Notes: generated by a model from the letters alone, not told the origin. A stretch of 64,000 bases of DNA from Macrostomum lignano (GCA_002269645.1 NIVC01001175.1:62001-126000), one strand, 5' to 3'. Numbered from the stretch's first letter, positions 25,783 through 58,933 are shown. Numbers and translations: made by a program.

Positions 25783-26360
25783 ATGAACAAGTCCAGCTAC
25801 ATCTGCCTGGGACTGCTGGTCCTGGCCTCCATGATCGGTAAGTGATTGAATCATGTAATGCACAGTTTCGCTCTGTCAATCAAAGGCACAGAATTTGAAT
25901 GATTGTCAGTCAAAACTGCCCACCCGCAGGTGTCGGACACGCCATCAGCTGTCTGGCATACAGCCACTCGGGCATTTCCGACCTCCGCGGCACCCCCACT
26001 GTACTGGAGTGCGGCAGCGCCGTCACCACCTGCAATAAGATGAACTTTGTACAATATTACACCGCTTCGAGCATGACCTTTAAATCCAATGGCAGCACTA
26101 CTGTGAGTAATAGATTAATGAGCTGATTCAGTCTGTCTCAGAATATTTGGCCCCATCCAAAGCAGCTGCGAACTCAAACGCACTCGCATTCTCAGGTCTA
26201 CGTTGGCAGCTGCGGCGGCTGCACTGGCTTGCCATCCTCGTACACCTGCACCACCTGCAGCACCGACCAGTGCAACTCCGCCTTCGCCGCTGTGCGCGCT
26301 GCCGCTCCTCTGACGCTGGCTCTGCCGCTGCTGATGGCCGCTGCCCTGCGCAGCTTCTAA
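25783..26360 (+). CDS. GPI-anchored 8-Cys Ly6/uPAR (three-finger)-like protein, copy 1; exons 25783-25837, 25930-26102, 26196-26360 (130 aa)
   Basis: Canonical GT-AG sites with consistent phases (1, 0). MNKSSYICLGLLVLASMIGVGHA signal; ISC...ECGSAVTTC...GSCGGC...CTTCSTDQCN; hydrophobic GPI-type tail SAFAAVRAAAPLTLALPLLMAAALRSF. Exon structure mirrored by the paralog. Confidence 0.88.
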
Positions 26361-26767
26361 AAGCAGAAAGAAAACTGGAGAGTTGGAGAGAATGAAACAC
26401 ATTGAAATACTCTACAAAAAACTGTGATATCGTTCCCTGATACTCAAGATCAACTTTTGCTACACGAATCAAATTATCCAGTTTTTTTACTATTTCGTAG
26501 CTTTAAATTCGTTTTATGATTAAGTTTAATTAATTTGATTTCCTTAAACTCTCGTAAAATTTATCCTTGTATTCTTCTAAAAGCCTGATTCCTATCTAAA
26601 AATGAAAAGTTCAATATAATCTCTTTTTCAAGCCAAATACAATACCAAACACACAAACAGTCAGTCCGTCTCAAATAAAATTTTAGATATTTTCTGAATA
26701 ATTAAAAAATGAGTCGGAGTATATGGCACGCTGTGAAGTTAATTTTCCAAAAAATGTGCACTGATGG

Positions 26768-28690
26768 TCAGCAGAGATCCGGAGTGAATGTCAGGAGAGA
26801 TTCGGAGTGAATGTCAGCAGAGATTCGGAGTGAATGTCAGCAGAGATTCGGAGTGATTGTCAGGAGAGATTCGGAGTGAATGTCAGGAGAGATTCGGAGT
26901 GAATGTCAGCAGAGATTCGGAGTGAATGTCAGGAGAGATTCGAAGTGATTGTCAGGAGAGATTCGGAGTGAATGTCAGGAGAGATTCGGAGTGAATGTCA
27001 GCAGAGATTCGGAGTGAATGTCAGGAGAGATTCGAAGTGAATGTCGAGAGAGATTCGGAGTGAATGTCAGGCGAGATTCGGAGTGAATGTCAGGAGAGAT
27101 CCGGAGTGAATGTCAGGAGAGATCCGGAGTAAATGTCAGTAGAGACTCTGAGTGAGTGTTAGTAGAGACTCGGAGTGAATGTCGGGAGAGATTCGGAGTG
27201 AATGTCAGGAGAGATTCGGAGTGAATGTCAGGAGAGATTCGGAGTGAATGTCAGGAGAGATTCGGAGTGAATGTCAGCAGAGATTCGGAGTGAATGTCAG
27301 GAGAGATTCGAAGTGAATGTCGAGAGAGATTCGGAGTGAATGTCAGGCGAGATTCGGAGTGAATGTCAGGAGAGATCCGGAGCGAATGTCAGGAGAGATT
27401 CGGAGTAAATGTCAGTAGAGACTCTGAGTGAGTGTTAGTAGAGACTCGGAGTGAATGTCGGGAGAGATTCGGAGTGAATGTCAGGAGAGATTCGGAGTGA
27501 ATGTCAGCAGAGATTCGGAGTGAATGTCAGCAGAGATTCGGAGTGAATGTCAGCAGAGATTCGGAGTGATTGTCAGGAGAGATTCGGAGTGAATGTCAGG
27601 AGAGATTCGGAGTGAATGTCAGCAGAGATTCGGAGTGAATGTCAGGAGAGATTCGAAGTGATTGTCAGGAGAGATTCGGAGTGAATGTCAGGAGAGATTC
27701 GGAGTGAATGTCAGCAGAGATTCGGAGTGAATGTCAGGAGAGATTCGAAGTGAATGTCGAGAGAGATTCGGAGTGAATGTCAGGCGAGATTCGGAGTGAA
27801 TGTCAGGAGAGATCCGGAGTGAATGTCAGGAGAGATCCGGAGTGAATGTCAGCAGAGATTCGGAGTGAATGTCAGGAGAGATTCGAAGTGAATGTCGAGA
27901 GAGATTCGGAGTGAATGTCAGGCGAGATTCGGAGTGAATGTCAGGAGAGATCCGGAGCGAATGTCAGGAGAGATTCGGAGTAAATGTCAGTAGAGACTCT
28001 GAGTGAGTGTTAGTAGAGACTCGGAGTGAATGTCGGGAGAGATTCGGAGTGAATGTCAGGAGAGATTCGGAGTGAATGTCAGCAGAGATTTGGAGTGAAT
28101 GTCAGCAGAGATTCGGAGTGAATGTCAGCAGAGATTCGGAGTGAATGTCAGGAGAGATTCGGAGTGAATGTCAGCAGAGATTCGGAGTGAATGTCAGGAG
28201 AGATTCGAAGTGATTGTCAGGAGAGATTCGGAGTGAATGTCAGCAGAGATTCGGAGTGAATGTCAGGAGAGATTCGGAGTGAATGTCAGGCGAGATTCGG
28301 AGTGAATGTCAGGAGAGATTCGAAGTGAATGTCGAGAGAGATTCGGAGTGAATGTCAGGCGAGATTCGGAGTGAATGTCAGGAGAGATCCGGAGCGAATG
28401 TCAGGAGAGATTCGGAGTAAATGTCAGTAGAGACTCTGAGTGAGTGTTAGTAGAGACTCGGAGTGAATGTCGGGAGAGATTCGGAGTGAATGTCAGGAGA
28501 GATTCGGAGTGAATGTCAGGAGAGACTCGGAGTGAATGTCAGGAGAGATTCGGAGTGAATGTCAGCAGTGATTCAGAGTGAATGTCAGGAGAGATTCGGA
28601 GTGAATGTCAGGAGAGATCTGGAGTGAAGGTCAGGAGAGATTCGGCTGTGAATGTCAGGAGAGATTCGGAGTGAATGTCAGGAGAGATTC
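26768..28690 (+). repeat. 23-nt minisatellite GAGATTCGGAGTGAATGTCAGGA (~83 units)
   Basis: Period 23; same family as the inverted array at 57581-57978. Confidence 0.97.
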
Positions 28691-29089
28691 AAGTGGTAAA
28701 GTTGAGATATTTTGGCCAGACCGGCCGGTTCATCTCTTTGCCGGCTCAGGGGAGCTGGTCCCCAACACGACCCCAATCGGAGTTTTTTTGGAGATGCGTG
28801 GATTCCGCTTCTCATTCGCTAAGACTTCTATTGCTCAGCCTCTCCGTATGAGTTTGTACCGGTATTGGCGTCTTCGGCATCAGGAATTTGAGCAGAGGAC
28901 GCAGCGCTACTTTACTAAATCATGGCGACCTTAGTCCAATCTTAGAATCGCACCCGTAGTTCTCAACTCCTTTTTCTCTTACTTTTAGTAGGCAGGTTCT
29001 GAGTTTTTCTCCTGTATTTATTCTGGCTGAGACTTATTTTCCTTTTTTCAGAACACTGTACTTCTTCGTAGGAATTTATTCCAACGACC

Positions 29090-29235
29090 CTGTTGTAACA
29101 CAGGCATACTACAGTTGTACTACAGGCATACTACAGTTGTAACACAGGCATACTACAGTTGTACCACAGGTATACTACAGTTGTACCACAGGTATACTAC
29201 AGTTGTACCACAGGTATACGAGCGTACTACAGTTA
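29090..29235. repeat. 22-nt tandem repeat GTACTACAGGCATACTACAGTT
   Basis: About 6 units. Confidence 0.85.
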
Positions 29236-29678: not shown

Positions 29679-32600
29679 GTGTGTATTAACCTACGGCCGG
29701 GGTTTCAGCCCGGCGAGGGCGGCCGACTCCAGAAAGGTGTACGCCTCGTCCACAAGTCACATGGGCGTCGGATTAGCAGGGCAATTGAAGAGATGGGCCA
29801 CAGTTTGAGGCTCTAGGCCGCAGACCGGACAGACCGCAGCGTCGAGGACGTCCGGGGCCGGAGCCGGCGCCCATTCAGCGTTAAAATGCTCCGCGTTGAA
29901 AATAGAGGCTTTCATGAGCCTGCGCGGAGGCGGGAGGCTAGCTAGGTGGTGACACGGATGTTCTGGGCGCCTAGTGCGGAGCTTGAACTGGAGCGCAAGG
30001 AGGCGGTTGTGCTGGCGGACGGTGAGCAGCTGGACTTGCCTGTGTAGGTCAACTTCTGAAGTAAGGGCCGTGCAACCAGTGATGCAACGGATCGCCGCGT
30101 TCTGAGCCGACTGAAGCAGGGTCCAGGACGACGTCGAGATAATAGGGCCCCACACCGGCGCAGCGTAGTCGAGTAAACTTCTGCCAAGCGCTTTGAAGGT
30201 GGTCAGCAGTAACTCCTTGCAGCAGCCCCAGGACGAGGCGGCAAGGCAGCACAGCAGGCAGATTCTTTTCCGGGTTTTCTTCGCAAGGGTGGAGACATGC
30301 CTAGAGGAGAGTTTAGGGTCGAACGTCGGGCCCAGAACTTTAGGATAGAGGCCCTGCGGCAGCTGGGAGCCATTGATGAAGACTCGCAGTTGGCGGGAGT
30401 ATTCGCGCTGGTCTGGACTGAACAGAGTGGCCGTACATTTAGTGGTTGAAATCTGGAGCTTGCGCGACTCAAGGAAGGGAGCGAGATCGGCCAGGTAGCT
30501 ATTAAGCTGCTGTTCAATGGAATTGCAACTTGGGGACGAGGCGGCAACGGTAAGGCCGTCTGCGTAGCCGATCAAGTTAGTAGCCGGATTGGCAGGCACA
30601 GGAGCTTTGGCCAGATAGAAGGCGAAAAGTAGCGGGCTGATGGCGCTGCCTTGAGGTACTCCCATGCGGACCTGCCGCCACTTCGACTTAATGTCCCGCA
30701 TGATGATCTGAGCTTCTCGTCCAAGGATATAGTTGGCAAGCCAGGCCTTAATAGTGTTTGGAAAATCCGACTCAACGAGGTCGGAGAGCAGTTCAAAGTG
30801 GTCAACACAGTCGAAAGCCATCCGGAGGTCGATCGCACCAACGCCAGTCCTGGCCGGGGGGTTCGTCAGACAGAAGCCCGAGCAAATCTGCTCGAACAGC
30901 TGGCAAAGGGCGGTCCTGGTTTAGTGATGTGGGCGAAGGCCATGTTGCCAGTCTGGAAGCTGTAGTTGGTCGGTCAGAAGCGATAACAGGACCTTCTCCA
31001 GAATTTTAACGAGCGGTGAGAGGAAGGAAATCGGTCGGTACGACACATCATCGTCCTACGGTTTTCCCTCTTTCAGAAGTGGACAGATTAAGGACTTCTT
31101 CCAGACCGCCCGGATCTCATTATCGGCACCGCTCGATTGCCCGGATAGAGCGGTTGTAGAGGTTCAGGAGCGCCGCTCTCGCTTTGGGCCCGAAGTGTCG
31201 AATAACGAGAGGACAGATTCCGTCAGGTCCAATAGCTTTGGAAGGCTTGGACCGCTTGATTGCACGCTCAATGTCGTCAGCCGAAAAGACAGGGGCGTCT
31301 CCTGTAGCGCGAGTGAGAGCCTTAAGGCGTCGGCGGACGACGCGCATCTGCGGGTTCGAGCAGTGAAGACGAGGTCTCGTGAACTGGCAGTTGAGCCGGT
31401 CCACCGTCTCCGTGCCAGATAAGGCTGGCTTTCCGTTGAATTTTAAGATAACATTTTTATCCGCGCTCGGACGGCCGGCCAGCTTTTTAAGAGTGGACCA
31501 GATCCTGGGGGTCGGGGCCGACTGATTGCCGTTCTCGAGGAGGAACTCGTTCCAGCGGTCCCGTCTCTCCGCTTCCAAGCTCGCGTTGATTTGCGCTTGG
31601 AGCTCCGCAATTCTAGGATCCGACGGATTGCTAGAGCGGAGGGCGTCACGCTTGGATGAGAGCAGGCGGATGTCCGGAGTACAAGGATGTCCGGAGTGCT
31701 GCTTGAAACGGGTCTCCGGAATCGCCGCTTTCTTGGCTGCCAGGACGAGCTTACAGAAGGCCACTTCTTGAGTATCGGCAGAGCCTTCGCCAGAAAAGCT
31801 GTCCAGGAGCTCTCGAGGGTGTTAGTGAAGAGTTTCCAGTTCGCCCTTCTGAAGTTGATGAAGCATATCAGCCAAATTGGACACTCCCAGCGAGATCAGG
31901 ATAGGCAGGTGGTTGCTAGAAAGAGTGTTGAGAATATCGTAGTCGGCTTTCAGAATTAAGGATTGGTGAACAACCGTAACGTCGGGGGTGGAGTTCGGTC
32001 CGTTGCTAGGGAGTCTAGATTGAGCAGGCGAAGAGAGGAAGTCGAAGGGCGCCTGTTCGACCTGGAGGGCCAGCGAGTCCCCGCGCGGGGTAGGATCAAG
32101 CGCAGATTCCCAGGCTGGGTGGTGAGCATTCCAATCACTACAGATCACAGTCGGAGAGTCGGTGAGCAGGCTGGACAGATCTGGAGAGTAGCCGGCGCCA
32201 CAGCTGCTATCTGGCGGCAGGTAGGAATTGAACAAGCGAAAGGACGAAGTGGAGTTAAACATGATATCGATGCCTTGGAGTTCGCTGTGCCGATCCGTAA
32301 GGTCCGATGTTTCTACTGGAGAGAAGCGGATGACGTCGCGGACGAATAGGAGGAAACCCCCGCCTCTAGAGTTAGGGCGGTCGGTATGAATATAGGAGTA
32401 GCCAGGAATATCAGGAGATTTCGAGTTGCAGGACAGTTTGGATTCTTGAATGGCGATGACATGCGGGTTGACGCTGCTACAAAGGTGCTCCAGTTCTTTA
32501 ATCTTGCCGGCACTGCCGTTGGCGTTCCACTGGAGGATGATGAGGTGAGCTTGAGAATCTGTGGCAGAGCACCCAGACTTGTTGTGAGTGCCGGTGTGGG

Positions 32601-33179: not shown

Positions 33180-34250
33180 TAGTTTCGGAGGTTGATAAAG
33201 TGCTTCAAGCGGTCGTGGTGGACCAGCAACCAACGCCTGCCGTTCACAGCCTGCAGCCGGTAGTTCACAGATCTGACCTTCTTAAGGACGATGAACGGGC
33301 CGGACCGCCGGTTCGACAGCGTCTTGCACTGGCCGCGCTTCAACGCATGGTGCGTCAGCATCACTCAGTCACCGGTCTTAAGTCGGTAGTCTCTGCCCCT
33401 AGATTGTAGAACTCGTGGGCGATCTCTGGGCCGCGCCTGATTCTCGCCTGCAGGTCCGTGCAGTCTGCGGCTGGTCGCGCTGCCCACCGAGCGCCAAGTC
33501 GACCGGCAGTCTCGGCTCCATGGCGCGTAGAACTTTTAAACGGCGACTCGCCCGTGGAGCTGTGCTCAGAGCTGTTGTAGACCCACAATATGTAGGGTAG
33601 CAGGGCGTTCCAGCTGACCTGGTTCTCCGAGCAGAATGCCGAAAGCATGTTGCCTAGTGTCCTATTGAACCTCTCGACGTTCCCGTTGCCGCTGGGTGAA
33701 ACGGTGAGGTTCTCGATTTTTCTGCTCCGAGCAGCGCGCAGGTCTGCTTGAAAACTTCGGCCCCAAACTGGCGACCTTGGTCCGAGTGCACGACCTCCGG
33801 AACTCCGTGCCGCAGCACCACGCAGGTCACCAGAACCTCGGCTACCGTCTTGGCGTCGATCTGGCTGAGGGCCGCCTTCACCCACTTTGAAAACGTGTCA
33901 ACAAAGCAGATGATGTAGCGCTTGCCTGACTCGGTGGCCGGCAGCAGGCCCTTGATATCGAGCTGCCTGACGGCCCACAGCTTGGCCGGTAGCCGCTGCC
34001 GCACCAGCTCAGCGCGCGCTCGCCTCGGCGCTCCCTTGCGGCGTTGGCAGACCAGGCAGCTCCGCACCTAGTCCCGCACGTCCTCACGCATGTCCGGCCA
34101 CCAGGAACACTCGCGCAGGGCCCGCAGCACCCGCCGCTGTCCGAGGTGACCCGCACTCGGCCGGTCCTGCGCCTATTGTAGCAGCTCCGCTCACATGTGC
34201 TGTGGGATCACCGGCAGCCCGTTGCGGAGCAGTGCGCCGTCCGGTGACAA
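33180..34250 (-). pseudogene. Gypsy integrase (HHCC, rve core, GPY/F), disrupted
   Basis: AGHLGQRR...WWPDMREDVRDYVRSCLVCQ; LDIKG, VHSDQGRQF, GNVERFNRTL; GPFIVL...VHHDRLK. Contains stops and frameshifts. Confidence 0.92.
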
Positions 34251-34287
34251 TGTCAGACAGGGCAGCAGCTTCTGGAACGACGTACTC

Positions 34288-34680
34288 TTTTTTATTTATT
34301 TTTTATTAGAGGCAGGGGGTAGTGTGCACCCTGGCGCACTTTAAGCGACATAGGCACACAACCGGCGAGAGGCATTACTGCCCATTCCGCCGACTCCCCT
34401 GAGCAGGCATACAAGCGCGCGGTTACGTACGCAGGCACACACTCACACAGAAGTGTACAGCGGCCCTAACTTTATATTATCGTTAGGCATGTACACTTCA
34501 CTGCGCCTTTGGGGGTTGGCTCTCAAGGCCATTAATTGCACGACCAGAGCTAAGCCGAGATTCCAATTCAGCCCCAAATTAATGTGACTGCACTTGGAAT
34601 CGAGCCTGGGTCGCTGGCACACCAGAACCTGCGCTAGACCGCTGGGCTACGGCCCCCTCGACCGGCCGGCCCCCCTCGAC
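34288..34680 (-). mobile_element. tRNA-derived SINE, 393 bp, inserted in the Gypsy pol
   Basis: A box TAGCCCAGCGG (34639-34649), B box GGCTCGATTCC (34596-34606), A-rich tail, 10-bp TSD CGACG(T/C)ACTC (34278-34287, 34681-34690). Removing it restores the frame VSASFQKLL. Confidence 0.85.
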
Positions 34681-34929
34681 CGACGCACTCACCGCCGCCG
34701 GAACTTGAAAGTTAGGCTGGAGCATCGCGTGCCGAACCGCGTGTAGAACCTGGTCCTGGTCCTGCTCGTCAGGCAGATTAGTGATCTGGAACTGCACCGC
34801 CGCTGCTCGGCTGAGGGTGTCAGGCACGATGTTCTCCTTGCCGGGCCGGTACAGGATCTCCAGGGGGAACTCCTGAATGAGTTGCAGCCAACGTGCGAGC
34901 CGACCCGTTGGCTCCTTCGCGTTGAGCAG

Positions 34930-36070
34930 CCCAGTGATCGGCTTGTGGTCGGTGAACACCTGGATCTTGCGATTGTTGCTCAGGTACATGCGGACTGCTT
35001 GAGGCTCCAAACGATCGCGAGCAGCTCCTGGTCCGTTGTACTGTAGTTGCGCTCTGCTTTGCTCAGTGTCCGGGACGCGTAGGACACTGGCAGCTCCTGG
35101 CTGAGCACCGCACCCAAGGCCACAGTACTGCTGTCACAGCTGATGACGATAGGCCGGCTGAAGTCGGGCAGCTGGAGCACCGGGGCCTGGGTCAGCGCGT
35201 CCTTCAACTTGTTCAGCGCCGCAGCATGCTCTGGCATCCACACGAAGTCGCCGCCCGCGCCTTTCTGAGCCAGGTGATGCAGCGATTTGGCAATGTCAGA
35301 GAAGTTTGGCACAAACCTGCGGTAGAAGCTGAGCATGCCGAAGATGCGCCGAACATCCTCCTCGGACTGCGGCTCCGGCATCCGCCTGATCGCCTCGACC
35401 TTCTCCGCGGCAGGTGCGATGCCGCTCTCAGAGACTTAGTGGCCCAGTTACGTGACGCTCCGGTAGGCGAAGAAGCTCTTGCCTGGGTTCAGCTTCAGCT
35501 TGGCAGACCACAGTCGATTTAGCACCTTGGACATTTACTAAAAGTGGCTCTCAAAGTCCCTGTTGAAGATGATCAGGTCATCAATGTTCGCAATGACCTC
35601 CTCCCAGCTCAGATCGGTCATGATGAGCTCCATCATTCGCTGGTAAGTCGCAAGCGCGCTGCCGAATCCCATTTTGCGGAATTGCATCAGGCCGCTCGGA
35701 GTGTAGAACGCTGTCAACGGCCGATCCTCCTCTCTGACCTCCACCTGAAGGAAGCCTTGGCGCATGTCGATCGTAGAGAACCATGAGCAGCCAGCCAAGG
35801 AGTCGAGCGCTTGGTGCAAATGCGGCAGCGGGTGGGCGTCTTTCACTGTGAGGTTGTTCAGCGCCCGCCAGTCGACACAGACTCGGATGTCATTATTCTT
35901 CTTTCTGACGATTATCAGGTTGCTCGCCCACGGGCTGGTGGAGGGCTCGATGACGCCGTGTTGTCTCATCTGCCCCAGCTTCTCGGCCACCTGCCTCCTG
36001 AAGGCGTGAGGCACCCGCAGAGGCCGTTGGCGAATCGGGCGTGCGCCGTCGTCCGCATCGATTGAAGTGG
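34930..36070 (-). pseudogene. Gypsy reverse transcriptase and RNase H, disrupted
   Basis: PIRQRP, IEPSTSPWAS, RVCVDWRALN, IDDLII, CDSSTVALGAVL, YSTTDQELLAIV, VFTDHKP motifs. Confidence 0.93.
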
Positions 36071-36074
36071 TAAA

Positions 36075-38120
36075 AAAGAGCAAAATTGAAAAAAATATTG
36101 TTACTACAGCGACTCACGCTGATTTTCATGTTTTAAATATCGCTTTATATAGTATTTCCGACGTAAATAAGTATTAGGACTGCAATTAGCTATTATATTT
36201 CGTCGCATTTAGCAACCTTAGGCATTACAGTGAATGTCTAGAGAGGTGGGAATTCAGGTAATTCATCTTGATGCTCATATTGCACCCTAACCTGCAATAT
36301 GCAGCCATCAAGTTTTCAACCAATTCCTGATAGTTGTCAGCTTTCCTATTTCCTAGAAAGTTGCTGACCACCTGGCAAAAAGCATGCCAGGCTGCCCTTT
36401 TCACATTCGTCATCGAGCTCTCAAAATCGGCATCCCGCATCAATTACCGGACTTGCGGGATTTGCCAGCCTTCTCAGCTTCTCCTCAGTGAGTGACGGAA
36501 ATGCACGGCACAAATACTCGACGCACTTTCCTTGCTTGTCGAGCGCTTTGGTAAATTGCTTGATGAGGCCCAATTTGATGTGCAGGTCTTGTTGCGATTA
36601 ACCAATGGCTCGTGGATCACATTCTTGGCTTTGCAAGGCTCCAGATGCTCCCTGACAGGCCATTCCTTCTGAATGTAGTGCTTCTGCTTTGCACGGCTGT
36701 CCCACATGCACAAGAAACAGGGAAACTTGGTGTAGCCTGACTGCTGGCCTAGCAGAAAATTGCCATCTTCAGATCAACGCAAATTACTCATTGGTGGTCG
36801 TGGTAGGCTTCATACCTTCAATAGTCCGGTTATGTCAGTACAGTACACCAAGTCTTTCTCCTGCGCGAAGTACTTCATTAATGGGCAGTGCCTGTTGTAT
36901 CTTCACCGAGAAAGTTCTTCGACTTCAGCCTGGAAGCCAGTAGCTCGCTGGCTTGCTTAGAAAGATGCAGATTGCGCACCAAGTCATTCAGCTCTCCTGG
37001 CGAGAAAGTCTGAGGAGCACAGCTCTCGTCAGAAGGCAATTAGGCATCATCATAAGCGAATGCATCCCCAGTGTCGCATTCCATGTCATCTTCGCCATCG
37101 CTGATGTCTTGCAGCCCAGCATACGCAGGTACAGGAATTTCCTCACAGTGAAGGACTGGCCGACGCGTTGTTTCAAGGTCAGGGTGTGTGAGAGTTATGC
37201 CGATTGTTGCGATTGATAATGTTTAGGCTGATGGCGCAAAAATAGCAGTCGCTGATGTGATTTGGTGTTCTCTCCACACCATCAGGATGCCGAACTTCAT
37301 GCCTCTGCTCTTGCCTTTGGTCCACAGGCGAAGTGCCTCTGTGCAGCTCTTGCAGACAACATGGGGGGCCCTTCGCTTGTCCTGGTCTGCAAGCTGCATT
37401 CCAAAGTATGACATATAGGCACGCTTAATGAATGGTGTTACAGAATTCAACCGATGCTTGAGGTTTTACTTGCCACAAATGTAGCAGAATGAGTTTGGGT
37501 CGTTCCTACATGCTCGCCTAGCCGATGCCATGGTTCCAAATTTGAGGTGAGGGTAGCCAGCGCGCACAGTGGTGATAGTTATAGAATTATTTGGCGATCA
37601 CAAGTGCCTGCTTTTATAGGCGTATCATATCATTATTTTATAGGCGCTGAGACCTGGGCCAAGCAGTCAAGATTAACACTTTTCAAAATTTTAGATTCAT
37701 ATTGATATCCTTAAGTGTTCATTCATGATTGCTTGGAAATCGAGAAGTGAGCACTACTGTCCTTCATATAAATACCTCTTTTTTCAAATTTTACCTGTTT
37801 ACCAAACGTGATCGTGGATACTCTAAAGTGCTTGTGGGATTTTTTTGCGCTTTGACCGCCATTATTTGCCTCCTAAACATCCCTTTGTGCGTTGAATACT
37901 AGTAAAAAGGCATTTTAAACTTGCAGATTGGTGTTCAACCTGATTTTTGGAAAAAAAAACATTAAATTTCTGCGATCATTTCAGAAATTCAAATTTGCCA
38001 AAAAACTTGACCTGATTGAGCAAAATGAAGGTGATTTTTGGATTCAGCGCCTCAAAATTATCTGAAATCAGCTGAGAAAGTATTGACCTTTTGAAAAAAA
38101 AACATTTTTTGTTGGCCAGT
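36075..38120 (-). mobile_element. Chapaev3-like (CMC) DNA transposon, 3'-truncated, transposase pseudogene (ATG 37531)
   Basis: MASARRACRNDPNSFCYICG; YFGMQLADQDK...APHVVCKSC; VWRE; AWHAFCQVVSNFLGNRKADNY...GCNMSIKMNYLNSHL. Terminus (C)ACTGGCCAACAAAAAA at ~38105-38120 with a GCTGAATCC subterminal motif. Family assignment from recalled motifs. Confidence 0.72.
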
Positions 38121-38235
38121 ACTTATCGTAAGGGCTTGCTAGCCCTGGGTACCGTTTCGTTTTGTTATCGTCTCGTCTCAGCCTCAGCTCCAAAAAGTTT
38201 GGCGGACCATCGGTCTCTTCATTTCTACAGTGCAG

Positions 38236-46849: not shown

Positions 46850-49800
46850 GGGGGATAATTGCAAACCTGACTGATGGATCATTGCAAACCTGACTGGGGG
46901 ATCATTGCAAACCTGACTGATGGATCATTGCAAACCTGACTGGGGGATCATTGCAAACCTGACTGGGGGATCATTGCAATCCTGACTGGGGGATCATTGC
47001 AAACCTGACTGGGGGATCATTGCAAACCTGACTGGTGGATCATTGCAAACCTGACTGGGGGATCATTGCAAACCTGACTGGGGGATAATTGCAAACCTGA
47101 CTGATGGATCATTGCAAACCTGACTGGGAGATCATTGCAAACCTGACTGGGGGATCATTGCAAACCTGACTGGGGGATCATTGCAAACCTGACTGGGGGA
47201 TCATTGCAAACCTGACTGGTGGATCATTGCAAACCTGACTGGGGGATCATTGCAAACCTGACTGGGGGATCATTGCAAACCTGACTGGGGGATCATTGCA
47301 AACCTGACTGGGGGATCATTGCAAACCTGACTGGGGGATCATTGCAAACCTGACTGGGGATCATTGCAAACCTGACTGGTGGATCATTGCAATCCTGACT
47401 GGGGGATCATTGCAAACCTGACTGGGGGATCATTGCAATCCTGACTGGGGGATTGTTGCAATCCTGACTGGGGGATCATTGCAAACCTGACTGGGGGGTC
47501 ATTGCAAACCTGACTGGGGGATCATTGCAAACCTGACTGATGGATCATTGCAAACCTGACTGGGGGATCATTGCAATCCTGACTGGGGGATCATTGCAAA
47601 CCTGACTGGGGGATCATTGCAAACCTGACTGGGGATCATTGCAAACCTGACTGGGGGATCATTGCAAACCTGACTGGTGGATCATTGCAAACCTGACTGG
47701 GGGATCATTGCAAACCTGACTGGGGGATCATTGCAAACCTGACTGGGGGATCATTGCAAACCTGACTGGGGGATCATTGCAAACCTGACTGGGGGATCAT
47801 TGCAAACCTGACTGGTGGATCATTGCAAACCTGACTGGGGGATCATTGCAAACCTGACTGGGGGATAATTGCAAACCTGACTGATGGATCATTGCAAACC
47901 TGACTGGGGGATCATTGCAAACCTGACTGGGGGATCATTGCAAACCTGACTGGGGGATCATTGCAAACCTGACTGGGGGATCATTGCAAACCTGACTGGT
48001 GGATCATTGCAAACCTGACTGGGGGATCATTGCAAACCTGACTGGGGGATCATTGCAAACCTGACTGGGGGATCATTGCAAACCTGACTGGGGGATCATT
48101 GCAAACCTGACTGGGGGATCATTGCAAACCTGACTGGTGGATCATTGCAAACCTGACTGGTGGATCATTGCAATCCTGACTGGGGGATCATTGCAAACCT
48201 GACTGGGGGATCATTGCAATCCTGACTGGGGGATTGTTGCAATCCTGACTGGGGGATCATTGCAAACCTGACTGGGGGGTCATTGCAAACCTGACTGGGG
48301 GATCATTGCAAACCTGACTGATGGATCATTGCAAACCTGACTGGGGGATCATTGCAATCCTGACTGGGGGATCATTGCAATCCTGACTGGGGGATCATTG
48401 CAATCCTGACTGGGGGATTGTTGCAATCCTGACTGGGGGATCATTGCAAACCTGACTGGGGGATCATTGCAAACCTGACTGGTGGATCATTGCAAACCTG
48501 ACTGGGGGATCATTGCAAACCTGACTGGGGGATCATTGCAATCCTGACTGGGGGATCATTGCAATCCTGACTGGGGGATTGTTGCAATCCTGACTGGGGG
48601 ATCATTGCAAACCTGACTGGGGGATCATTGCAATCCTGACTGGGGGATCATTGCAATCCTGACTGATGGATCATTGCAAACCTGACTGGGGGATCATTGC
48701 AAACCTGACTGGGGGATCATTGCAATCCTGACTGGGGGATCATTGCAATCCTGACTGATGGATCATTGCAAACCTGACTGGGGGATCATTGCAAACCTGA
48801 CTGGGGGATCATTGCAAACCTGACTGGGGGATCATTGCAAACCTGACTGGGGGATCATTGCAATCCTGACTGGGGGATTGTTGCAATCCTGACTGATGGA
48901 TCATTGCAAACCTGACTGGGGGATAATTGCAAACCTGACTGATGGATCATTGCAAACCTGACTGGGGGATCATTGCAAACCTGACTGGGGGATCATTGCA
49001 AACCTGACTGGGGGATCATTGCAATCCTGACTGGGGGATCATTGCAATCCTTACTGGGGGATTGTTGCAATCCTGACTGGGGGATCATTGCAAACCTGAC
49101 TGGGGGATCATTGCAAACCTGACTGGGGGATCATTGCAATCCTGACTGGGGGATCATTGCAAACCTGACTGGGGGATCATTGCAATCCTGACTGGGGGAT
49201 CATTGCAATCCTGACTGGGGGATCATTGCAATCCTGACTGGGGGATTGTTGCAATCCTGACTGGGGGATCATTGCAAACCTGACTGGGGGATCATTGCAA
49301 ACCTGACTGGTGGATCATTGCAAACCTGACTGGGGGATCATTGCAAACCTGACTGGGGGATCATTGCAATCCTGACTGGGGATCATTGCAATCCTGACTG
49401 GGGATTGTTGCAATCCTGACTGGGGGATCATTGCAAACCTGACTGGGGGATCATTGCAATCCTGACTGGGGATCATTGCAATCCTGACTGGGGGATCATT
49501 GCAATCCTGACTGGGGAATCATTGCAAACCTGACTGGGGGATCATTGCAATCCTGACTGGGGGATCATTGCAATCCTGACTGATGGATCATTGCAAACCT
49601 GACTGGGGGATCATTGCAAACCTGACTGGGGGATCATTGCAAACCTGACTGGGGGATCATTGCAAACCTGACTGGGGGATCATTGCAATCCTGACTGGGG
49701 GATCATTGCAATCCTGACTGGGGGATTGTTGCAATCCTGACTGATGGATCATTGCAAACCTGACTGGGGGATAATTGCAAACCTGACTGGGGGATCATTG

Positions 49801-52800
49801 CAAACCTGACTGGGGGATCATTGCAAACCTGACTGGGGGATCATTGCAAACCTGACTGGGGGATCATTGCAAACCTGACTGATGGATCATTGCAAACCTG
49901 ACTGGGGGATCATTGCAAACCTGACTGGGGGATCATTGCAAACCTGACTGGGGGATCATTGCAATCCTGACTGGGGGATCATTGCAATCCTGACTGAGGG
50001 ATTGTTGCAATCCTGACTGGGGGATCATTGCAAACCTGACTGGGGGATCATTGCAATCCTGACTGGGGGATCATTGCAATCCTGACTGGGGGATCATTGC
50101 AATCCTGACTGGGGGATCATTGCAAACCTGACTGGTGGATCATTGCAATCCTGACTGGGGGATCATTGCAATCCTGACTGGGGGATTGTTGCAATCCTGA
50201 CTGGGGGATCATTGCAAACCTGACTGGGGGATCATTGCAAACCTGACTGGGGGATCATTGCAATCCTGACTGGGGGATCATTGCAATCCTGACTGGGGGA
50301 TTGTTGCAATCCTGACTGGGGGATCATTGCAAACCTGACTGGGGGATCATTGCAATCCTGACTGGGGGATTGTTGCAATCCTGACTGGGGGATCATTGCA
50401 ATCCTGACTGGGGGATTGTTGCAAACCTGACTGGGGGATCATTGCAATCCTGACTGGGGATTGTTGCAATCCTGACTGGGGATCATTGCAATCCTGACTG
50501 GGGATTGTTGCAAACCTGACTGGGGGATCATTGCAATCCTGACTGGGGATTGTTGCAAACCTGACTGGGGGATCATTGCAATCCTGACTGGGGGATCATT
50601 GCAATCCTGACTGGGGGATCATTGCAATCCTGACTGGGGGATCATTGCAATCCTGACTGGGGGATCATTGCAAACCTGACTGGGGGATCATTGCAATCCT
50701 GACTGGGGGATCATTGCAATCCTGACTGGGGGATTGTTGCAAACCTGACTGGGGGATCATTGCAAACCTGACTGGGATCATTGCAAACCTGACTGGGATC
50801 ATTGCAAACCTGACTGGGATCATTGCAATCCTGACTGGGATCATTGCAATCCTGACTGGGATCATTGCAATCCTGACTGGGATCATTGCAATCCTGACTG
50901 GGATCATTGCAAACCTGACTGGGGGATCATTGCAAACCTGACTGGGGGATCATTGCAAACCTGACTGGGGGATCATTGCAAACCTGACTGGTGGATCATT
51001 GCAAACCTGACTGGTGGATCATTGCAATCCTGACTGGGGGATCATTGCAAACCTGACTGGGGGATCATTGCAATCCTGACTGGGGGATTGTTGCAATCCT
51101 GACTGGGGGATCATTGCAAACCTGACTGGGGGGTCATTGCAAACCTGACTGGGGGATCATTGCAAACCTGACTGATGGATCATTGCAAACCTGACTGGGG
51201 GATCATTGCAATCCTGACTGGGGGATCATTGCAATCCTGACTGGGGGATTGTTGCAATCCTGACTGGGGGATCATTGCAAACCTGACTGGGGGATCATTG
51301 CAAACCTGACTGGTGGATCATTGCAAACCTGACTGGGGGATCATTGCAAACCTGACTGGGGGATCATTGCAATCCTGACTGGGGGATCATTGCAATCCTG
51401 ACTGGGGATTTGCAATCCTGACTGGGGGATCATTGCAAACCTGACTGGGGGATCATTGCAATCCTGACTGGGGGATCATTGCAATCCTGACTGATGGATC
51501 ATTGCAAACCTGACTGGGGATCATTGCAAACCTGACTGGGGGATCATTGCAATCCTGACTGGGGGATCATTGCAATCCTGACTGGGATCATTGCAAACCT
51601 GACTGGGGATCATTGCAAACCTGACTGGGGGATCATTGCAAACCTGACTGGGGGATCATTGCAAACCTGACTGGGGGATCATTGCAATCCTGACTGGGGA
51701 TTTGCAATCCTGACTGATGGATCATTGCAAACCTGACTGGGGGATAATTGCAAACCTGACTGATGGATCATTGCAAACCTGACTGGGGGATCATTGCAAA
51801 CCTGACTGGGGGATCATTGCAAACCTGACTGGGGATCATTGCAATCCTGACTGGGGGATCATTGCAATCCTGACTGGGGATTGTGCAATCCTGACTGGGG
51901 ATCATTGCAAACCTGACTGGGGGATCATTGCAAACCTGACTGGGGGATCATTGCAATCCTGACTGGGGGATCATTGCAAACCTGACTGGGGGATCATTGC
52001 AATCCTGACTGGGGGATCATTGCAATCCTGACTGGGGGATCATTGCAATCCTGACTGGGGGATTGTTGCAATCCTGACTGGGGGATCATTGCAAACCTGA
52101 CTGGGGGATCATTGCAAACCTGACTGGGATCATTGCAAACCTGACTGGGGGATCATTGCAAACCTGACTGGGGGATCATTGCAATCCTGACTGGGGGATC
52201 ATTGCAATCCTGACTGGGGGATTGTTGCAATCCTGACTGGGGGATCATTGCAAACCTGACTGGGGGATCATTGCAATCCTGACTGGGGGATCATTGCAAT
52301 CCTGACTGGGGGATCATTGCAATCCTGACTGGGGGATCATTGCAAACCTGACTGGGGGATCATTGCAATCCTGACTGGGGGATCATTGCAATCCTGACTG
52401 GGATCATTGCAAACCTGACTGGGGGATCATTGCAAACCTGACTGGGGGATCATTGCAAACCTGACTGGGGATCATTGCAAACCTGACTGGGGGATCATTG
52501 CAATCCTGACTGGGGATCATTGCAATCCTGACTGGGGGATTTGCAATCCTGACTGATGGATCATTGCAAACCTGACTGGGGGATATTGCAAACCTGACTG
52601 ATGGATCATTGCAAACCTGACTGGGGGATCATTGCAAACCTGACTGGGGGATCATTGCAAACCTGACTGGGGGATCATTGCAAACCTGACTGATGGATCA
52701 TTGCAAACCTGACTGGGGGATCATTGCAAACCTGACTGGGGGATCATTGCAAACCTGACTGGGGGATCATTGCAATCCTGACTGGGGGATCATTGCAATC

Positions 52801-54637
52801 CTGACTGAGGGATTGTTGCAATCCTGACTGGGGATCATTGCAAACCTGACTGGGGATCATTGCAATCCTGACTGGGGGATCATTGCAATCCTGACTGGGG
52901 GATCATTGCAATCCTGACTGGGGGATCATTGCAAACCTGACTGGGGATCATTGCAATCCTGACTGGGGGATCATTGCAATCCTGACTGGGGGATTGTTGC
53001 AATCCTGACTGGGGGATCATTGCAAACCTGACTGGGGGATCATTGCAAACCTGACTGGGGGATCATTGCAATCCTGACTGGGGGATCATTGCAATCCTGA
53101 CTGGGGGATTGTTGCAATCCTGACTGGGGGATCATTGCAAACCTGACTGGGGGATCATTGCAATCCTGACTGGGGGATTGTTGCAATCCTGACTGGGGGA
53201 TCATTGCAATCCTGACTGGGGGATTGTTGCAAACCTGACTGGGGGATCATTGCAATCCTGACTGGGGGATTGTTGCAATCCTGACTGGGGGATCATTGCA
53301 ATCCTGACTGGTGGATTGTTGCAAACCTGACTGGGGGATCATTGCAATCCTGACTGGGGGATTGTTGCAAACCTGACTGGGGGATCATTGCAATCCTGAC
53401 TGGGGGATCATTGCAATCCTGACTGGGGGATCATTGCAATCCTGACTGGGGGATCATTGCAATCCTGACTGGGGGATTGTTGCAATCCTGACTGGGGGAT
53501 CATTGCAAACCTGACTGGGGGATCATTGCAATCCTGACTGGGGGATCATTGCAATCCTGACTGGGGGATTGTTGCAATCCTGACTGGGGGATCATTGCAA
53601 ACCTGACTGGGGGATCATTGCAATCCTGACTGGGGGATTGTTGCAATCCTGACTGGGGGATCATTGCAATCCTGACTGGGGGATTGTTGCAAACCTGACT
53701 GGGGGATCATTGCAATCCTGACTGGGGGATTGTTGCAATCCTGACTGGGGGATCATTGCAATCCTGACTGGTGGATTGTTGCAAACCTGACTGGGGGATC
53801 ATTGCAATCCTGACTGGGGGATTGTTGCAAACCTGACTGGGGGATCATTGCAATCCTGACTGGGGGATCATTGCAATCCTGACTGGGGGATCATTGCAAT
53901 CCTGACTGGGGGATCATTGCAATCCTGACTGGGGGATCATTGCAAACCTGACTGGGGGATCATTGCAATCCTGACTGGGGATCATTGCAATCCTGACTGG
54001 GATTGTTGCAAACCTGACTGGGGGATCATTGCAAACCTGACTGGGATCATTGCAATCCTGACTGGGATCATTGCAAACCTGACTGGGATCATTGCAATCC
54101 TGACTGGGATCATTGCAATCCTGACTGGGATCATTGCAATCCTGACTGGGATCATTGCAATCCTGACTGGGATCATTGCAAACCTGACTGGGATCATTGC
54201 AATCCTGACTGGGATCATTGCAATCCTGACTGGGATCATTGCAATCCTGACTGGGGGATCATTGCAATCCTGACTGGGGGATCATTGCAAACCTGACTGG
54301 GGGATCATTGCAATCCTGACTGGGGGATCATTGCAATCCTGACTGGGGGATTGTTGCAAACCTGACTGGGGGATCATTGCAAACCTGACTGGGATCATTG
54401 CAAACCTGACCGGGATCATTGCAAACCTGACTGGGATCATTGCAATCCTGACTGGGATCATTGCAATCCTGACTGGGATCATTGCAATCCTGACTGGGAT
54501 CATTGCAATCCTGACTGGGATCATTGCAATCCTGACTGGGATCATTGCAATCCTGACTGGGATCATTGCAATCCTGACTGGGGATCATTGCAATCCTGAC
54601 TGGGGATTATTGCAAACCCGATTGGTGGATAATTGCT
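46850..54637. repeat. 23-nt satellite GGGGGATCATTGCAAACCTGACT (~340 units, 7.8 kb) with 21-nt GGG sub-arrays
   Basis: Period 23; 21-nt variants at ~50770-50910 and ~53990-54560. Confidence 0.98.
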
Positions 54638-55439: not shown

Positions 55440-56962
55440 TATACCAATCGGTAAGCCTTTGTCGAAGTCTTTGTTATTTAAGACTTCACAAAGCCTTCAA
55501 AGACTTCATACAGCCATTTCTGCTGTCATGGCGCTGTACCACGGCACGACGGCTGCTGTCTCAACACCGGACGGCCTATCGGATTTCTTCGAGACATCCT
55601 CCGGGGTGCTCCAGGGAGATACGCTAGCGCCGTTCCTATTTATTCTGGTGCTTGACTGGGTGCTGCGGACTGCTCTGCCTTCCAACGACGACGGCTTCCT
55701 GCTGCGGCGACGTGTGGGTCGACGCCAACCGGAGAGACGGCTCAGCGTGCTTGGCTACGCCGATGACCTCGCCCTGCTGTCCTCGACCGTCGAGGGCGCC
55801 CAACGACAGCTGGATAGGCTGGTTGCCGTTGCGGCGAGCGTCGGCCTGGTGGTCAACACGCAGAAGACCGTCGTGCTATGCGTGCCGGACGACACCGAGG
55901 CTGCAATCTGCTGCCGAGGCGCTGACGGACAGGCGAGTGAGCTTCCAAGATGTCAGCAGTTCGTCTACCTCGGCGGTCTGGTTCCCGACGTTCGCGAGGA
56001 TCTGCGGCGTCGCCGAGGACTTGCTTGGGCTGCCTTTCGTTCTATAAGGTCAGTTCTGCAGTCCGAGGCCCTACCGGACCGCCAGAGGGCGGCGCTGTTC
56101 CAGGCGGTGATCGAAACCGTCCTGTTATACAACGCCGAGACCTGGACGCTGACAGACTCGCTCGAGGCTCAAGTCGACGCGGCGCACGCTGGCCTGCTGC
56201 GCGCCGCCTTCAAGATCGGCAACGAGCGAGTCACCAACACGGCGCTCTACCATCGCGCCGGCCTGGCCCGTCCTAGCGATCTGCTGCGCCGTCGGCGACT
56301 CCAGCTGGCAGGCCACGTCATCCGCGCCGAGGCCTACTGTCCGGAGCCGGTGCAGGAGGTGCTGCTACTTACGTTGCAGGCACCCTACCGGCGGGGACAA
56401 GCGAGGACACGGCGCTACGTCGACTGTCTGCTGGCTGACGCCGGCGCCCCGGACTCTGCCGGCGGTGCGGCCTTTGTTCGCGCCCAGGCTTCGAAGCGTG
56501 CCATCTGACGTTGCTTTTGTGATCCGGCAGCGTACTCTGTTGTTGTTGTTGTTGTTGTTATTTAATTTTTGAAAGCTGAGTTTATTGCCGGCCGTTATTG
56601 ATCCGTTCATTTCTATTGAGTTATTGAATTTGAGGTCTCCCTATTCCTAAGGGATTGGATAGGATCCACTGGACCGATTCCGATACTCAGACGAATTATT
56701 GATTTGAGTGATTTTGGAACTCTACAGTAACAGATAAAAGGGCACACACGACTCCGATTCCGTCATTTATAGAAGAAGACGCCCTTTCTGGAGTACCTCA
56801 TTACTGCTATAAAGTTGATTTTGTCATTAGGGCGCACCTCTGATTCTGATTACTGATCTCGAGGAATACATTTACGTTGACGGATTAAATTTTTACGTCA
56901 CTCAAGTGCTCGGAAGAGGGAGTTTTCGAGTGACTGGATCACCACTCTTAAACTCTTCAACA
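55440..56962 (-). mobile_element. Unclassified dispersed repeat, copy 2, split by the RTE insertion
   Basis: Both flanks of the RTE match consecutive parts of 38453-39020 in inverted orientation. Confidence 0.65.
55481..56554 (+). mobile_element. 5'-truncated RTE-clade LINE (RT and C-terminus, ORF to 56508)
   Basis: GVLQGDTLAPFLF, GYADDL, FVYLGG, ETVLLYNAETWTL, LQLAGHVIR; (TTG)n tail; TSD TTGTTATTTAA at 55470-55480 and 56555-56565. Confidence 0.9.
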
Positions 56963-57580
56963 TATTAGGCTTCAGTAGTACAATTTAAGAAATTAGTCAC
57001 TCTCTGTTATGGCACTGACGGCTATTAGTGCATTATATTATTGTAAGAGATGTCCCATATAGACATGCTGAAAATTTACAAGCGCATTAGAGAGCCAAGA
57101 GCTCATATTGAGTTTCGAACTCGCAGTTTAGTTTGCGTCACAACTTCAAATCGGTTCATCCCTACCCCTAGTCTTTCCTTTGCTTCTCTGGCAAGCACTG
57201 ACAAGAGTATGATGCCTTGCAGTAGTTTCTTTTCACGATACTATTTTTAGTAGTCCCTGGCTGGTCTACCATAGATTTTTCATACCATATTGCTTCTAAA
57301 TGGTTGCCAATCGCAACAGTACAGGCCCGAACATTCAGTATTGAAGGGGGAGGACAGAGTGAGTAGTTTAAGGTATGAATATTCTCTGAAGTTCCAGCCC
57401 GCTATCTATAACTAATTTTAGCGATATTCCCATCCTAATGTCAGGTTCAGTTACTTTAATATAGAGTCAGAACCAGATATGATTTTCTTATTAAATTTAA
57501 AAAAATTAAACTATTGATATTTTTCTTTTCCCGTTTGACTATCCGATATCACTCGTAAAATTTGCTTCAGGCCTGCCGTG

Positions 57581-57978
57581 CAATTCACTCCGAATCTCTC
57601 CTGGCATTCACTCCGAATCTCTCCTGACATTCACTCCAAATCTCTCCTGACATTCACTCCGAATCTCTCCTGACATTCACTCAGAATCTCTCCTGACATT
57701 CACTCCGAATTTCTCCTGACATTCACTCCGAATCTCTCCTGACATTCACTCCAAATCTCTCCTGACATTCACTCCGAATCTCTCCTGACATTCACTCAGA
57801 ATCTCTCCTGACATTCACTCCGAATTTCTCCTGACATTCACTCCGAATCTCTCCTGACATTCACTCCAAATCTCTCCTGGCATTCACTCCGAATCTCTCC
57901 TGACATTCACTCCGAATCTCTCCTGACATTCACTCCGAATCTCTCCTGGCATTCACTCCGAATCTCTCCTGACATTCA
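57581..57978 (-). repeat. 23-nt minisatellite, reverse complement of the 26768-28690 family (~17 units)
   Basis: CATTCACTCCGAATCTCTCCTGA is the reverse complement of TCAGGAGAGATTCGGAGTGAATG. Confidence 0.97.
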
Positions 57979-58345
57979 GTGCACTAACTTTCTGCAATAA
58001 TTTACAATTGCTGAATTTTAAAAATAAGCAGAAACTTTGATAGTGTTTTTACGATTCAGAAAGTTTGTGTTGTACTTGGCTTTAAAGAAAACATATGAAT
58101 TTTCTTAAGTAGAAAATTTGCTTGTAACAGAATATAGGTGGGATAAATTTTGCCAGAATTTAATAAAATCAAATTACTTAAACCTAATCGTCAAACAAAC
58201 TTAAGGCTGCTAAGAAGTAAAAAGTTAAATAATTTGATTCGTGTAACAAAAGTAGATTTTGAGTATCAGGGAACGATATTAAAGTTTTTTGTAGAGTATT
58301 TCAATGTGTTTCATTCTCTCCAACTCTCCAGTTTTATTGCTGCTT

Positions 58346-58933
58346 TTAGAAGCTGCGCAGGGCGGCGGCCATCAGCAGCGGCATAGCCAGCGTCAGAGGA
58401 GCGGCAGCGCGAACAGCACCGAAGGCGGAGTTGCACTGGTCGGTGGTGCAGTTGGTGCAGGTGTAATAAGACGGGAAGATGCCAATGCAGGCGCCGCAGT
58501 CGCCAGTGTAGGCCTGAGAATGCGAGTGCGGTGAGAGCTCAGCTGCTTTGGATGGGGCCAAAAATTCTGAGACAGACTCAATCAGCTCATGCATTTACTA
58601 CTCACAGTACTGCTGAAATTGGCTTTATAGGTCGTAGGCGAATGGGTATGATATCGCACAATGCTTATCTTCTTGCAGGTGGTGACGGCGCTGCCGCACT
58701 CCACTACAGTGGGGGTGCCGCGGAGACCTTCAATGCCCTCATGGCCATATACCAGACAGCTGATGGCGTGTCCGACACCTGCGTGTGAGCAGTTTTAGCA
58801 GATGATATTCAAATTCAGTTTATTTTATTGGCAGTACAAGAAAACTGCGTATTTCACATGCTTCAGTCAGCTTACCAACTAAGGCGGCCAGGACGCTGAG
58901 TCCCAGGAGAATCGAGTTGGTCTTCTTCAGCAT
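58346..58933 (-). CDS. GPI-anchored 8-Cys Ly6/three-finger-like protein, copy 2; exons 58933-58876, 58778-58606, 58513-58346 (132 aa)
   Basis: MLKKTNSILLGLSVLAALVGVGHA-ISCLVYGHEGIEGLRGTPTVVECGSAVTTCKKISIVRYHTHSPTTYKANFSSTAYTGDCGACIGIFPSYYTCTNCTTDQCN-SAFGAVRAAAPLTLAMPLLMAAALRSF; canonical splice sites with the same phases as copy 1. Confidence 0.88.

Follow-up and report, generated by a model that had tools for sequence, protein, structure and literature searches.

Three-finger proteins whose loops are under selection while their introns and untranslated regions (UTRs) stay conserved are familiar from snake toxins, the salamander plethodontid modulating factor (PMF) and mammalian Ly6 proteins. 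In Ly6/three-finger proteins a stable scaffold carries loops that are retuned for different partners, as in toxins, pheromones, complement control proteins and receptor modulators. In Ly6/CD59 genes the signal peptide has its own exon and the domain is spread over two more, the last of which also encodes the signal for attachment of a glycosylphosphatidylinositol (GPI) anchor. Here, a family of disulfide-rich proteins was analysed in a stretch of 64,000 nucleotides from the flatworm Macrostomum lignano (GCA_002269645.1 NIVC01001175.1:62001-126000; hereafter the window, with positions counted from its first letter), which contains two intact family genes, copies 1 and 2. The closest described system is that of the Ly6/uPAR GPI proteins, which include CD59, Lynx1, Ly6E, Drosophila quiver/sleepless and the Schistosoma CD59-like/SmLy6 proteins (PMC3812095, PMC4492491). 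The three-finger domain is defined by conserved half-cystines, five strands and an Asn adjoining the last Cys, and platyhelminth CD59-like proteins have ten conserved Cys (PMC3812095). On balance, the data favour the view that the genes described here form a GPI-anchored, probably three-finger, Macrostomum-restricted surface family in which positive selection has remodelled the loops and both the scaffold and the targeting signals have been conserved.

Gene models were rebuilt by reading the window sequence, and the splice sites were checked by script. Copies 1 and 2 are both intact, with three exons each; copy 1 is encoded on the plus strand and copy 2 on the minus strand, 32 kb apart, and positions 25783 and 58933 are their respective ATG codons. 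All of their introns are of the GT..AG type and 92-97 nt long. The spliced copy 1 protein (130 residues) is 100% identical to BOX15_Mlig010602g1 in GenBank, whose contig in assembly GCA_002269645.1 measures 205,708 bp, and the copy 2 protein (132 residues) is BOX15_Mlig013890g1, from the same contig. Within copy 1 (25783-26360), exon 1 (25783-25837) holds the ATG and the signal peptide (MNKSSYICLGLLVLASMI-G), and is near-identical in copy 1, in the paralogues P0002 (P2) and P0003 (P3) and in P7-type genes. The hypervariable exon 2 (25930-26102) completes the signal peptide and goes on to encode Cys1-Cys3, with loop I and the greater part of loop II. Intron 2 (26103-26195; 93 nt, GTGAGT..CAG), which is less diverged among paralogues than the exons that flank it, separates this from exon 3 (26196-26360), which supplies Cys4-Cys8 and the CN motif, followed by the GPI-attachment signal and the stop codon. 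Some 100 nt 5' of the copy 1 ATG there is a putative TATA box, TATATAAAG (25680-25688, plus strand), a candidate promoter element of copy 1 whose motif is kept in P2/P3/P7-type genes. Copy 2 (58933-58346) is built likewise, from an exon 1 with the ATG and a signal peptide of the other type (MLKKTNSILLGLSVLAALV-G; 58876-58933), an exon 2 with the hypervariable part of the domain (58606-58778), a 92-nt intron 2 (58514-58605) and an exon 3 that carries Cys4-Cys8, CN, the GPI signal and the stop codon (58346-58513).

The preliminary description of this locus had proposed a family of GPI-anchored surface proteins with eight Cys, and family searches and alignments bear out a multigene family of this kind, secreted and with a GPI signal. 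Homologues were sought in a word index with copy 1 as the query, in 1.84 billion representative proteins by exhaustive profile search, and with a second, broader profile. Only M. lignano proteins were returned, together with one intron-less transcript contig, P0015, from SRR28338165 (Logan); none of these searches gave a bridge to known Ly6 proteins, and the profile searches retrieved no platyhelminth CD59-like proteins. Ten genes were modelled, and these share a single structure: a signal-peptide exon of 55-58 nt, an exon of 167-173 nt for the first half of the domain, and one of 165-168 nt for the second half and the GPI signal, separated by introns of 72-97 nt. The family is thus far labelled as 'hypothetical proteins'; it is lineage-restricted, unannotated and sequence-isolated, with a modified cysteine framework.

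M. lignano has been described as a neopolyploid (PMC10733133), and near-identical contigs were therefore read as homeologues or haplotypes. The Mlig_3_7 assembly holds two to three near-identical versions of each family locus. On contig NIVC01001388, P0002 (syntenic with copy 1) is followed in turn by P0003, by a gene relic, by P0005 (which corresponds to copy 2) and by P0007. Two more contigs bear genes of the copy 2 and P7 types, and the order copy-1-type, copy-2-type, P7-type is repeated on each homeologous contig. The window lacks a gene of the P0003 type. A second locus contains P0010/P0032-type and P0017/P0018-type genes, of which P0017 and P0018 stood in for P0004 and P0008, two paralogues found only in UniRef and lacking a DNA record.

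The family precursor consists of a hydrophobic signal peptide, a mature domain of ~81 residues with eight Cys that ends in C-x4-C-N and, directly after it, a GPI-like signal; both signals were judged by sequence inspection. The signal peptide has a 12-residue hydrophobic core, and G-H-A (G-x-A) precedes the predicted cleavage site, after which the mature protein would start with Ile. At the C-terminus, the small residues N-S-A (a candidate omega site) are followed by the nine-residue spacer FAAVRAAAP and the hydrophobic LTLALPLLMAAAL, in a tail of 13-16 residues. These features suggest that the proteins are anchored in the membrane through GPI. Purifying selection acts on the signal and GPI segments, in which pairwise ratios of replacement to silent change (dN/dS, or ω) are 0-0.4 by the method of Nei and Gojobori. 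An alignment of copies 1 and 2 supports the earlier statement that the Cys, core, glycosylation sequon and GPI tail are kept, since the eight Cys, RGTPTVxECGSAVTTC, the NGS/NFS sequon and the tail AF(A/G)AVRAAAPLTLA(L/M)PLLMAAALRSF are common to both. Across 12 aligned members, down to 34% identity, residues C3, C23, C30, C59, C62, C71, C74, C79 and N80 (mature numbering) are invariant, and C79-N80 is retained even in P0012 and P0015, which are 34-36% identical. In seven genes, the eight Cys are invariant, as are the CN motif and the two targeting signals, yet mature residues differ by up to 43%. This pattern of a conserved scaffold with variable loops lies far beyond chance.

The resemblance to Ly6/uPAR proteins extends to a precursor of ~130 residues, a signal peptide, a single disulfide-rich domain of ~80 residues that ends in C-x4-C-N with the GPI signal next to it, three coding exons and multigene clusters. 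The C2-x6-C3 and C7-x4-C8-N spacings are identical to those of CD59. Two AlphaFold2 runs were made, with and without the GPI tail and with 8 and 12 sequences, and the first (low-confidence) model contains five β-strands arranged as three hairpin-like fingers. When the two models were compared with 350,542 PDB chains using Foldseek, three-finger proteins made up ~45/50 and ~43/50 of the top matches, including short- and long-chain snake neurotoxins, muscarinic toxins, uPAR, Lynx1 and SLURP-2. The structural matches are thus consistent, if weak, with TM scores of 0.37-0.67. Of the features that define the three-finger domain (PMC3812095), eight invariant Cys and an invariant CN are present in the 12 aligned members, and five strands are seen in the low-confidence model only. 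In addition, UniRef names copy 2 and five relatives automatically as 'UPAR/Ly6 domain-containing' and one member as 'Protein quiver', although the match that underlies these names was not reproduced.

Several results weigh against this fold assignment. A Pfam hmmscan of 10 members at E<=10, in which UPAR_LY6, UPAR_LY6_2, QVR, Toxin_TOLIP, DUF753 and other profiles of the uPAR_Ly6_toxin clan were considered, gave no match to the clan except for one of Toxin_cobra type (P0007, E=0.36, 11.5 bits). Sequence and profile searches against PDB sequences returned nothing relevant; matches to alphavirus E2 at E ~0.3 were dismissed as chance. With hhalign against five human LU proteins, only the terminal CxxDxCN aligned (8 columns, probability 3.8%); of the five human sequences, CD59 alone was checked, being exact against PDB 1CDQ. 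Confidence in the AlphaFold2 models was low (predicted local distance difference test scores of 56.6 and 45.3) and became worse once the two most distant members were added. The Foldseek E-values are also weak, at 0.18-5, the best being 0.23 and 0.18 for the two models. Moreover, C6 and C7 are two residues apart, giving C-x2-C instead of the canonical adjacent Cys-Cys. Further departures from the canonical domain, and from the Ly6/uPAR proteins, are the presence of eight Cys rather than ten, the absence of the loop-I disulfide, as the earlier remark on a missing Cys pair had it, and a long loop II of 28 residues between Cys3 and Cys4; nor do the flatworm proteins have significant sequence or profile similarity to that group.

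Observations of this kind would also fit if the proteins were secreted or GPI-anchored and fast-evolving but had a novel, flatworm-specific disulfide-rich fold that shares only the CN-plus-GPI motif with Ly6. The failure to match Pfam, PDB or hhalign targets, the isolation of the family in the exhaustive protein search, the atypical Cys framework and the low AlphaFold confidence all fit such a novel fold. It is nevertheless unlikely, as two separate models retrieve three-finger proteins almost exclusively, the first of them with five predicted strands, and as the three-exon layout is Ly6-like and several members bear the UniRef names mentioned above. The eight Cys and the invariant Asn after the last Cys likewise fit the definition of the domain (PMC3812095). 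Of the three-finger/Ly6 assignment in the preliminary description, then, the part that rested on the CN motif stands and is joined by the spacings and Foldseek matches, whereas no significant sequence or profile match was added and the models are of low confidence. Judged from the models and the Cys pattern, a three-finger fold is likely.

The evidence for selection begins with a comparison of coding and non-coding divergence. Between copies 1 and 2, the mature domain contains 29 replacement codons and one indel against 5 codons with synonymous changes only, in agreement with the counts first given (28 and an insertion against about 5). The similarity noted earlier for the proximal 3'UTR (~7/117 differences) and intron 2 was also confirmed, with 9/120 mismatches in the former (26361-26480 in copy 1) and 10/92 in the latter; further downstream of the proximal 3'UTR, similarity drops to ~70%. 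Comparisons among copy 1, P0002, P0003, copy 2 and P0017 give a divergence of 17-27% for mature-coding DNA and of only 4-15% for intron 2, which lies between the variable exon parts, so the claim that exons diverge faster than the intron holds beyond the first pair. In the comparison of P0002 with copy 2, intron 2 has 4/91 differences and the mature-coding sequence 57/259 (Fisher p=3e-5). The excess of exon over intron 2 divergence extends to P0017, which is situated at another locus. Four-fold degenerate third positions at which the amino acid is unchanged are 3-22% diverged, which is intron-like (3/28 for copy 1 versus copy 2). Since these sites match the intron, the exons are not hypermutated, and the excess consists of replacement changes. 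Exon hypermutation was rejected on this ground, four-fold sites of conserved codons being no more diverged than the intron.

Next, codon site models were fitted to copy 1, P0002, P0003, copy 2, P0005, P0017 and P0018 (83 codons), so that five paralogues or homeologues on other contigs joined the two intact genes of the window. The comparison of M1a with M2a gave twice the log-likelihood difference (2ΔlnL) as 42.2 and that of M8a with M8 as 42.7; about 25% of sites were placed at ω ~7-8 and ~57% at ω <0.1 (~0.05-0.09). Values ranged from 41.5 to 43.9 over all three topologies of the four lineage groups, fell to 34.7 for the seven genes with equal codon frequencies, and were 28.5-37.2 for a five-gene subset under three frequency models. 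When the mature parts of exon 2 and exon 3 were analysed separately, M1a versus M2a gave 31.8 and 17.5. In a parametric bootstrap under the fitted M1a (n=115), the 95th percentile was 4.1 and the highest value 9.0, which indicates that the program is sound under the null and that the observed value is far outside the null distribution. A six-gene run that included a P7-type gene was treated as unreliable, tree length having inflated to 25, and the conclusions rest on the runs without P7. A pseudogenised or constraint-relaxed state of copies 1 and 2 was also rejected, given their intact open reading frames (ORFs), the invariant Cys and the large class of strongly constrained sites.

In the mature numbering of copy 1, a posterior above 0.95 was reached in loop I by A5, S9 and S12, and further by L21; in loop II by N31, M33, V36, Q37, A41, M44, F46 and T52; directly before Cys4 by V56; and in loop III by S69. 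This distribution agrees with the earlier observation that changes cluster after Cys1 and in the long Cys3-Cys4 loop. There is thus a class of codons, clustered in loops I and II, with dN/dS significantly above 1, and the selection signal is site-specific. Positive selection as first proposed is upheld at the level of site classes (2ΔlnL 28-44), with neutrality rejected now that more copies are included in the M1a/M2a and M8a/M8 comparisons; for the domain as a whole, ω is not above 1.

A number of points stand against positive selection on a working surface protein. The site models were run with the author's own Goldman-Yang (GY94) codon program rather than codeml, and rest on only ~5 independent lineages. 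Pairwise ω of the mature domain is 0.6-1.3 by Nei-Gojobori, and by maximum likelihood 0.3-0.8 (F3x4) or 0.9-1.5 (equal frequencies), never significantly above 1. Recombination among paralogues can inflate site-model tests, and the conservation of intron 2 could be due to constraint or conversion. As to expression, a full-text literature search for five gene identifiers found no mention, the supplements of M. lignano transcriptome papers contained no expression entry for family genes, and nothing relevant was found that links Macrostomum lignano to Ly6.

Several of these points could be accommodated without positive selection if the loops were simply unconstrained (ω ~1) and gene conversion or ectopic recombination time and again homogenised the gene ends and intron 2, or if intron 2 were itself constrained. 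Whole-domain ω of ~0.3-1.5 depends on the model and would be compatible with this, as would the fact that the proximal 3'UTR is conserved and the distal UTR is not. Recombination in the family is, moreover, real. Copy 1, P0002, P0003 and a P7-type gene have promoter, 5'UTR and exon 1 in common at ~97% identity; the tract shared by copy 1 and P7 runs from the upstream minisatellite to 11 nt inside intron 1 and then ends, the rest of the gene being 30-50% diverged. This abrupt end points to a recombination breakpoint that produced chimeric genes. The conservation of gene ends is therefore partly a product of exchange, as the 5' tract is shared by divergent genes, and the earlier argument from UTR and gene-end conservation stands for the similarity itself and is weakened to the extent that recombination or gene conversion contributed to it.

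Against this, the site models weigh replacement against silent change inside the same exons, and ω<=1 is still rejected (2ΔlnL 28-44, compared with the bootstrap maximum of 9). Intron 2 is bordered on both sides by more diverged coding DNA, also in the P17 pair at its other locus, so that conversion tracts would need to match intron 2 exactly in many pairs. Four-fold sites of conserved codons diverge at the level of the intron, and many of the selected codons differ at 2-3 positions. Loops free of positive selection thus appear a distinctly improbable account, more so than a novel fold. With further copies included, dN/dS exceeds 1 for a class of loop sites, the similarity of the UTRs appears not to be the work of recent gene conversion alone, and the fold predicted at low confidence is not unrelated to three-finger domains.

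The shared 5' flank is seen when window positions 24003-25848 are compared with L003 1-1947 (also L005 and L006) and includes the 21-mer array, promoter, 5'UTR and exon 1. There are two signal-peptide/promoter types in the family, MNKSS... and MLKKT/MLNKT..., which are incongruent with the mature-domain tree. Intron 2 (26103-26195 and 58514-58605) is unusually conserved among paralogues, with a minimum of 4/91 differences (P0002 versus copy 2), and an Rfam scan of it for an RNA element matched no family.

Homeologous copies show where the changes have accumulated. Copy 2 and P0005 differ in 2 mature residues and P0017 and P0018 in 3, and the three P7 genes encode identical proteins, while non-coding DNA differs by 2-10% across the homeologous contigs that carry these near-identical proteins. 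The only homeologue pair with many replacements is copy 1 and P0002 (13, against 4 silent changes). As the homeologues or alleles of copy 2, P7 and P17 (P0017) are almost unchanged, this is not a generally hypervariable locus; diversification occurs between paralogues.

A third sequence in the window, copy 3 (~45789-45967, plus strand), is a truncated pseudogene that is ~75% identical to the other copies. In it, a 120-nt piece of exon 2 (~45789-45908) is joined to the final ~37 nt of exon 3 and the beginning of the UTR (~45918-45967), and signal exon 1, intron 2 and Cys4-Cys8, the C-terminal half of the domain, are missing. An orthologous relic is present on a homeologous contig, which identifies copy 3 as an old pseudogene. 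Its variation in the first loop, which had been put forward as support for selection, is therefore neutral decay and provides no such evidence. Exon-2-only relics were found at L002 18792-18884, L003 5214-5381, L005 14233-14346, L006 13193-13345 and window 45789-45967. They occupy conserved positions beside intact genes on every homeologous contig, are interrupted by stop codons and share 70-76% identity with intact genes. One could imagine a Macrostomum-specific recognition system (for example sperm-egg, partner or self/non-self) that generates specificities through positive selection and exon-level exchange between paralogues, with the exon-2-only relics as sequence donors in the manner of the pseudogene cassettes of other diversifying systems; this scheme is very improbable.

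There is almost no probability that a single gene has been multiplied by assembly artefacts or uncollapsed haplotypes and that the divergence of the copies is allelic: the neopolyploid assembly does hold near-identical locus versions, and copy 1/P0002 and copy 2/P0005 are such pairs, but copies 1 and 2 themselves lie 32 kb apart in the window on opposite strands, which refutes the idea for this pair, their promoters are unrelated (55% mismatch upstream), their signal peptides differ, and the same gene order recurs on each homeologous contig.

The most likely origin of a family of GPI-anchored, probably three-finger proteins with positively selected loops is as follows. Tandem or inverted duplication of a gene with its flanking minisatellite unit would expand the family, and the recent M. 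lignano genome doubling would add further copies. After duplication, positive selection would repeatedly swap residues in loop I (Cys1-Cys2) and above all in loop II (Cys3-Cys4), while the disulfide core and the two targeting signals would be maintained by purifying selection, and ectopic recombination or gene conversion would preserve or exchange the gene ends. Each paralogue would thereby gain a binding specificity of its own and, once this was fixed, stay conserved. By analogy with three-finger proteins, in which the loops are the binding surface, each paralogue may bind its own ligand; receptor modulation, reproductive recognition and interaction with microbes are candidates for the role of the family.

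Two further systems invite comparison. Snake three-finger toxins, a multigene family, have an 8-Cys form of the fold that lacks the loop-I disulfide and rank first among the structural matches. Their exons evolve faster than introns and UTRs, with replacements concentrated in the loops, while signal peptide, introns and UTRs are conserved. The toxins differ in being secreted, soluble products of vertebrate venom glands, whereas the flatworm proteins are predicted to be GPI-anchored; there is no sequence similarity between the two, and nothing points to a toxic function here. Salamander PMF (PMC4029566, PMC6487043) is likewise an 8-Cys family of three-finger type with an altered cysteine/disulfide framework, and combines hypervariable coding sequence with conserved untranslated regions. 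It is driven by reproductive selection, which would be a plausible setting for the hermaphrodite M. lignano with its strong sexual conflict; the difference is that PMF, a courtship pheromone, is secreted and varies among many co-expressed isoforms within individuals.

The family therefore adds to a well-known theme, and is a good rather than a surprising instance of it. It shows the same evolutionary signature in a free-living flatworm, in proteins too diverged for standard domain searches, and is a clear invertebrate case of exons outpacing their own intron. As M. lignano is the sole flatworm with routine transgenesis and RNA interference, the link between loop diversification and function is directly testable.

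The interval between copies 1 and 2 contains only transposon remains and kilobase-long minisatellites, and no other host gene. A 23-nt minisatellite (GTCAGGAGAGATTCGGAGTGAAT) lies 3' of copy 1 (26767-28690, plus strand) and, in inverted orientation, 3' of copy 2 (57583-57978, minus strand); the same array follows P3, copy-2-type and other genes in L002-L006. As it stands behind almost every gene of the copy-1/copy-2 subfamily, the 23-mer array is part of the duplicated unit. Copy 1 is preceded by a 21-nt minisatellite (22563-25118, plus strand) that P7-type genes have in common with it, along with the promoter and exon 1. Altogether, minisatellites with units of 21-34 nt are found at 15015-16958, 17640-19886, 22563-25118, 26767-28690, 42663-45680, 46850-54636 and 57583-57978; the arrays reach 7.8 kb (343 copies of a 23-mer) and occupy a large share of the window. 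Beyond copy 2, a 3.6-kb (AGATAGAT)n array (59880-63461) of ~448 copies, 96% matching, has strong GC and AT skew.

Mobile elements are represented by an apparently intact mariner-like transposase ORF of 427 residues with ...HDNAPAH... and PYSPDLAP motifs (4309-5592, plus strand), and by a degenerate fragment of a similar element that adjoins copy 3 (~46300-46750, plus strand). Retroelement remains lie amid the family genes at 29757-31764 (minus strand), 33361-41022 (minus strand) and 55459-56508 (plus strand), and comprise non-LTR (long terminal repeat) reverse-transcriptase fragments and gypsy-like LTR pieces with gag/protease, reverse transcriptase and integrase. A marginal tRNA match (8428-8496, minus strand; Rfam 30.7 bits against a gathering score of 29) falls inside a repeat at 8221-8484, and this short repeat recurs in L004-L006; it is probably a tRNA-derived short interspersed element. 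Finally, a 303-residue ORF at 812-1723 (plus strand), rich in Q, P and H and with poly-Pro and poly-Gln runs, could be either a host-gene exon or mere low-complexity sequence.

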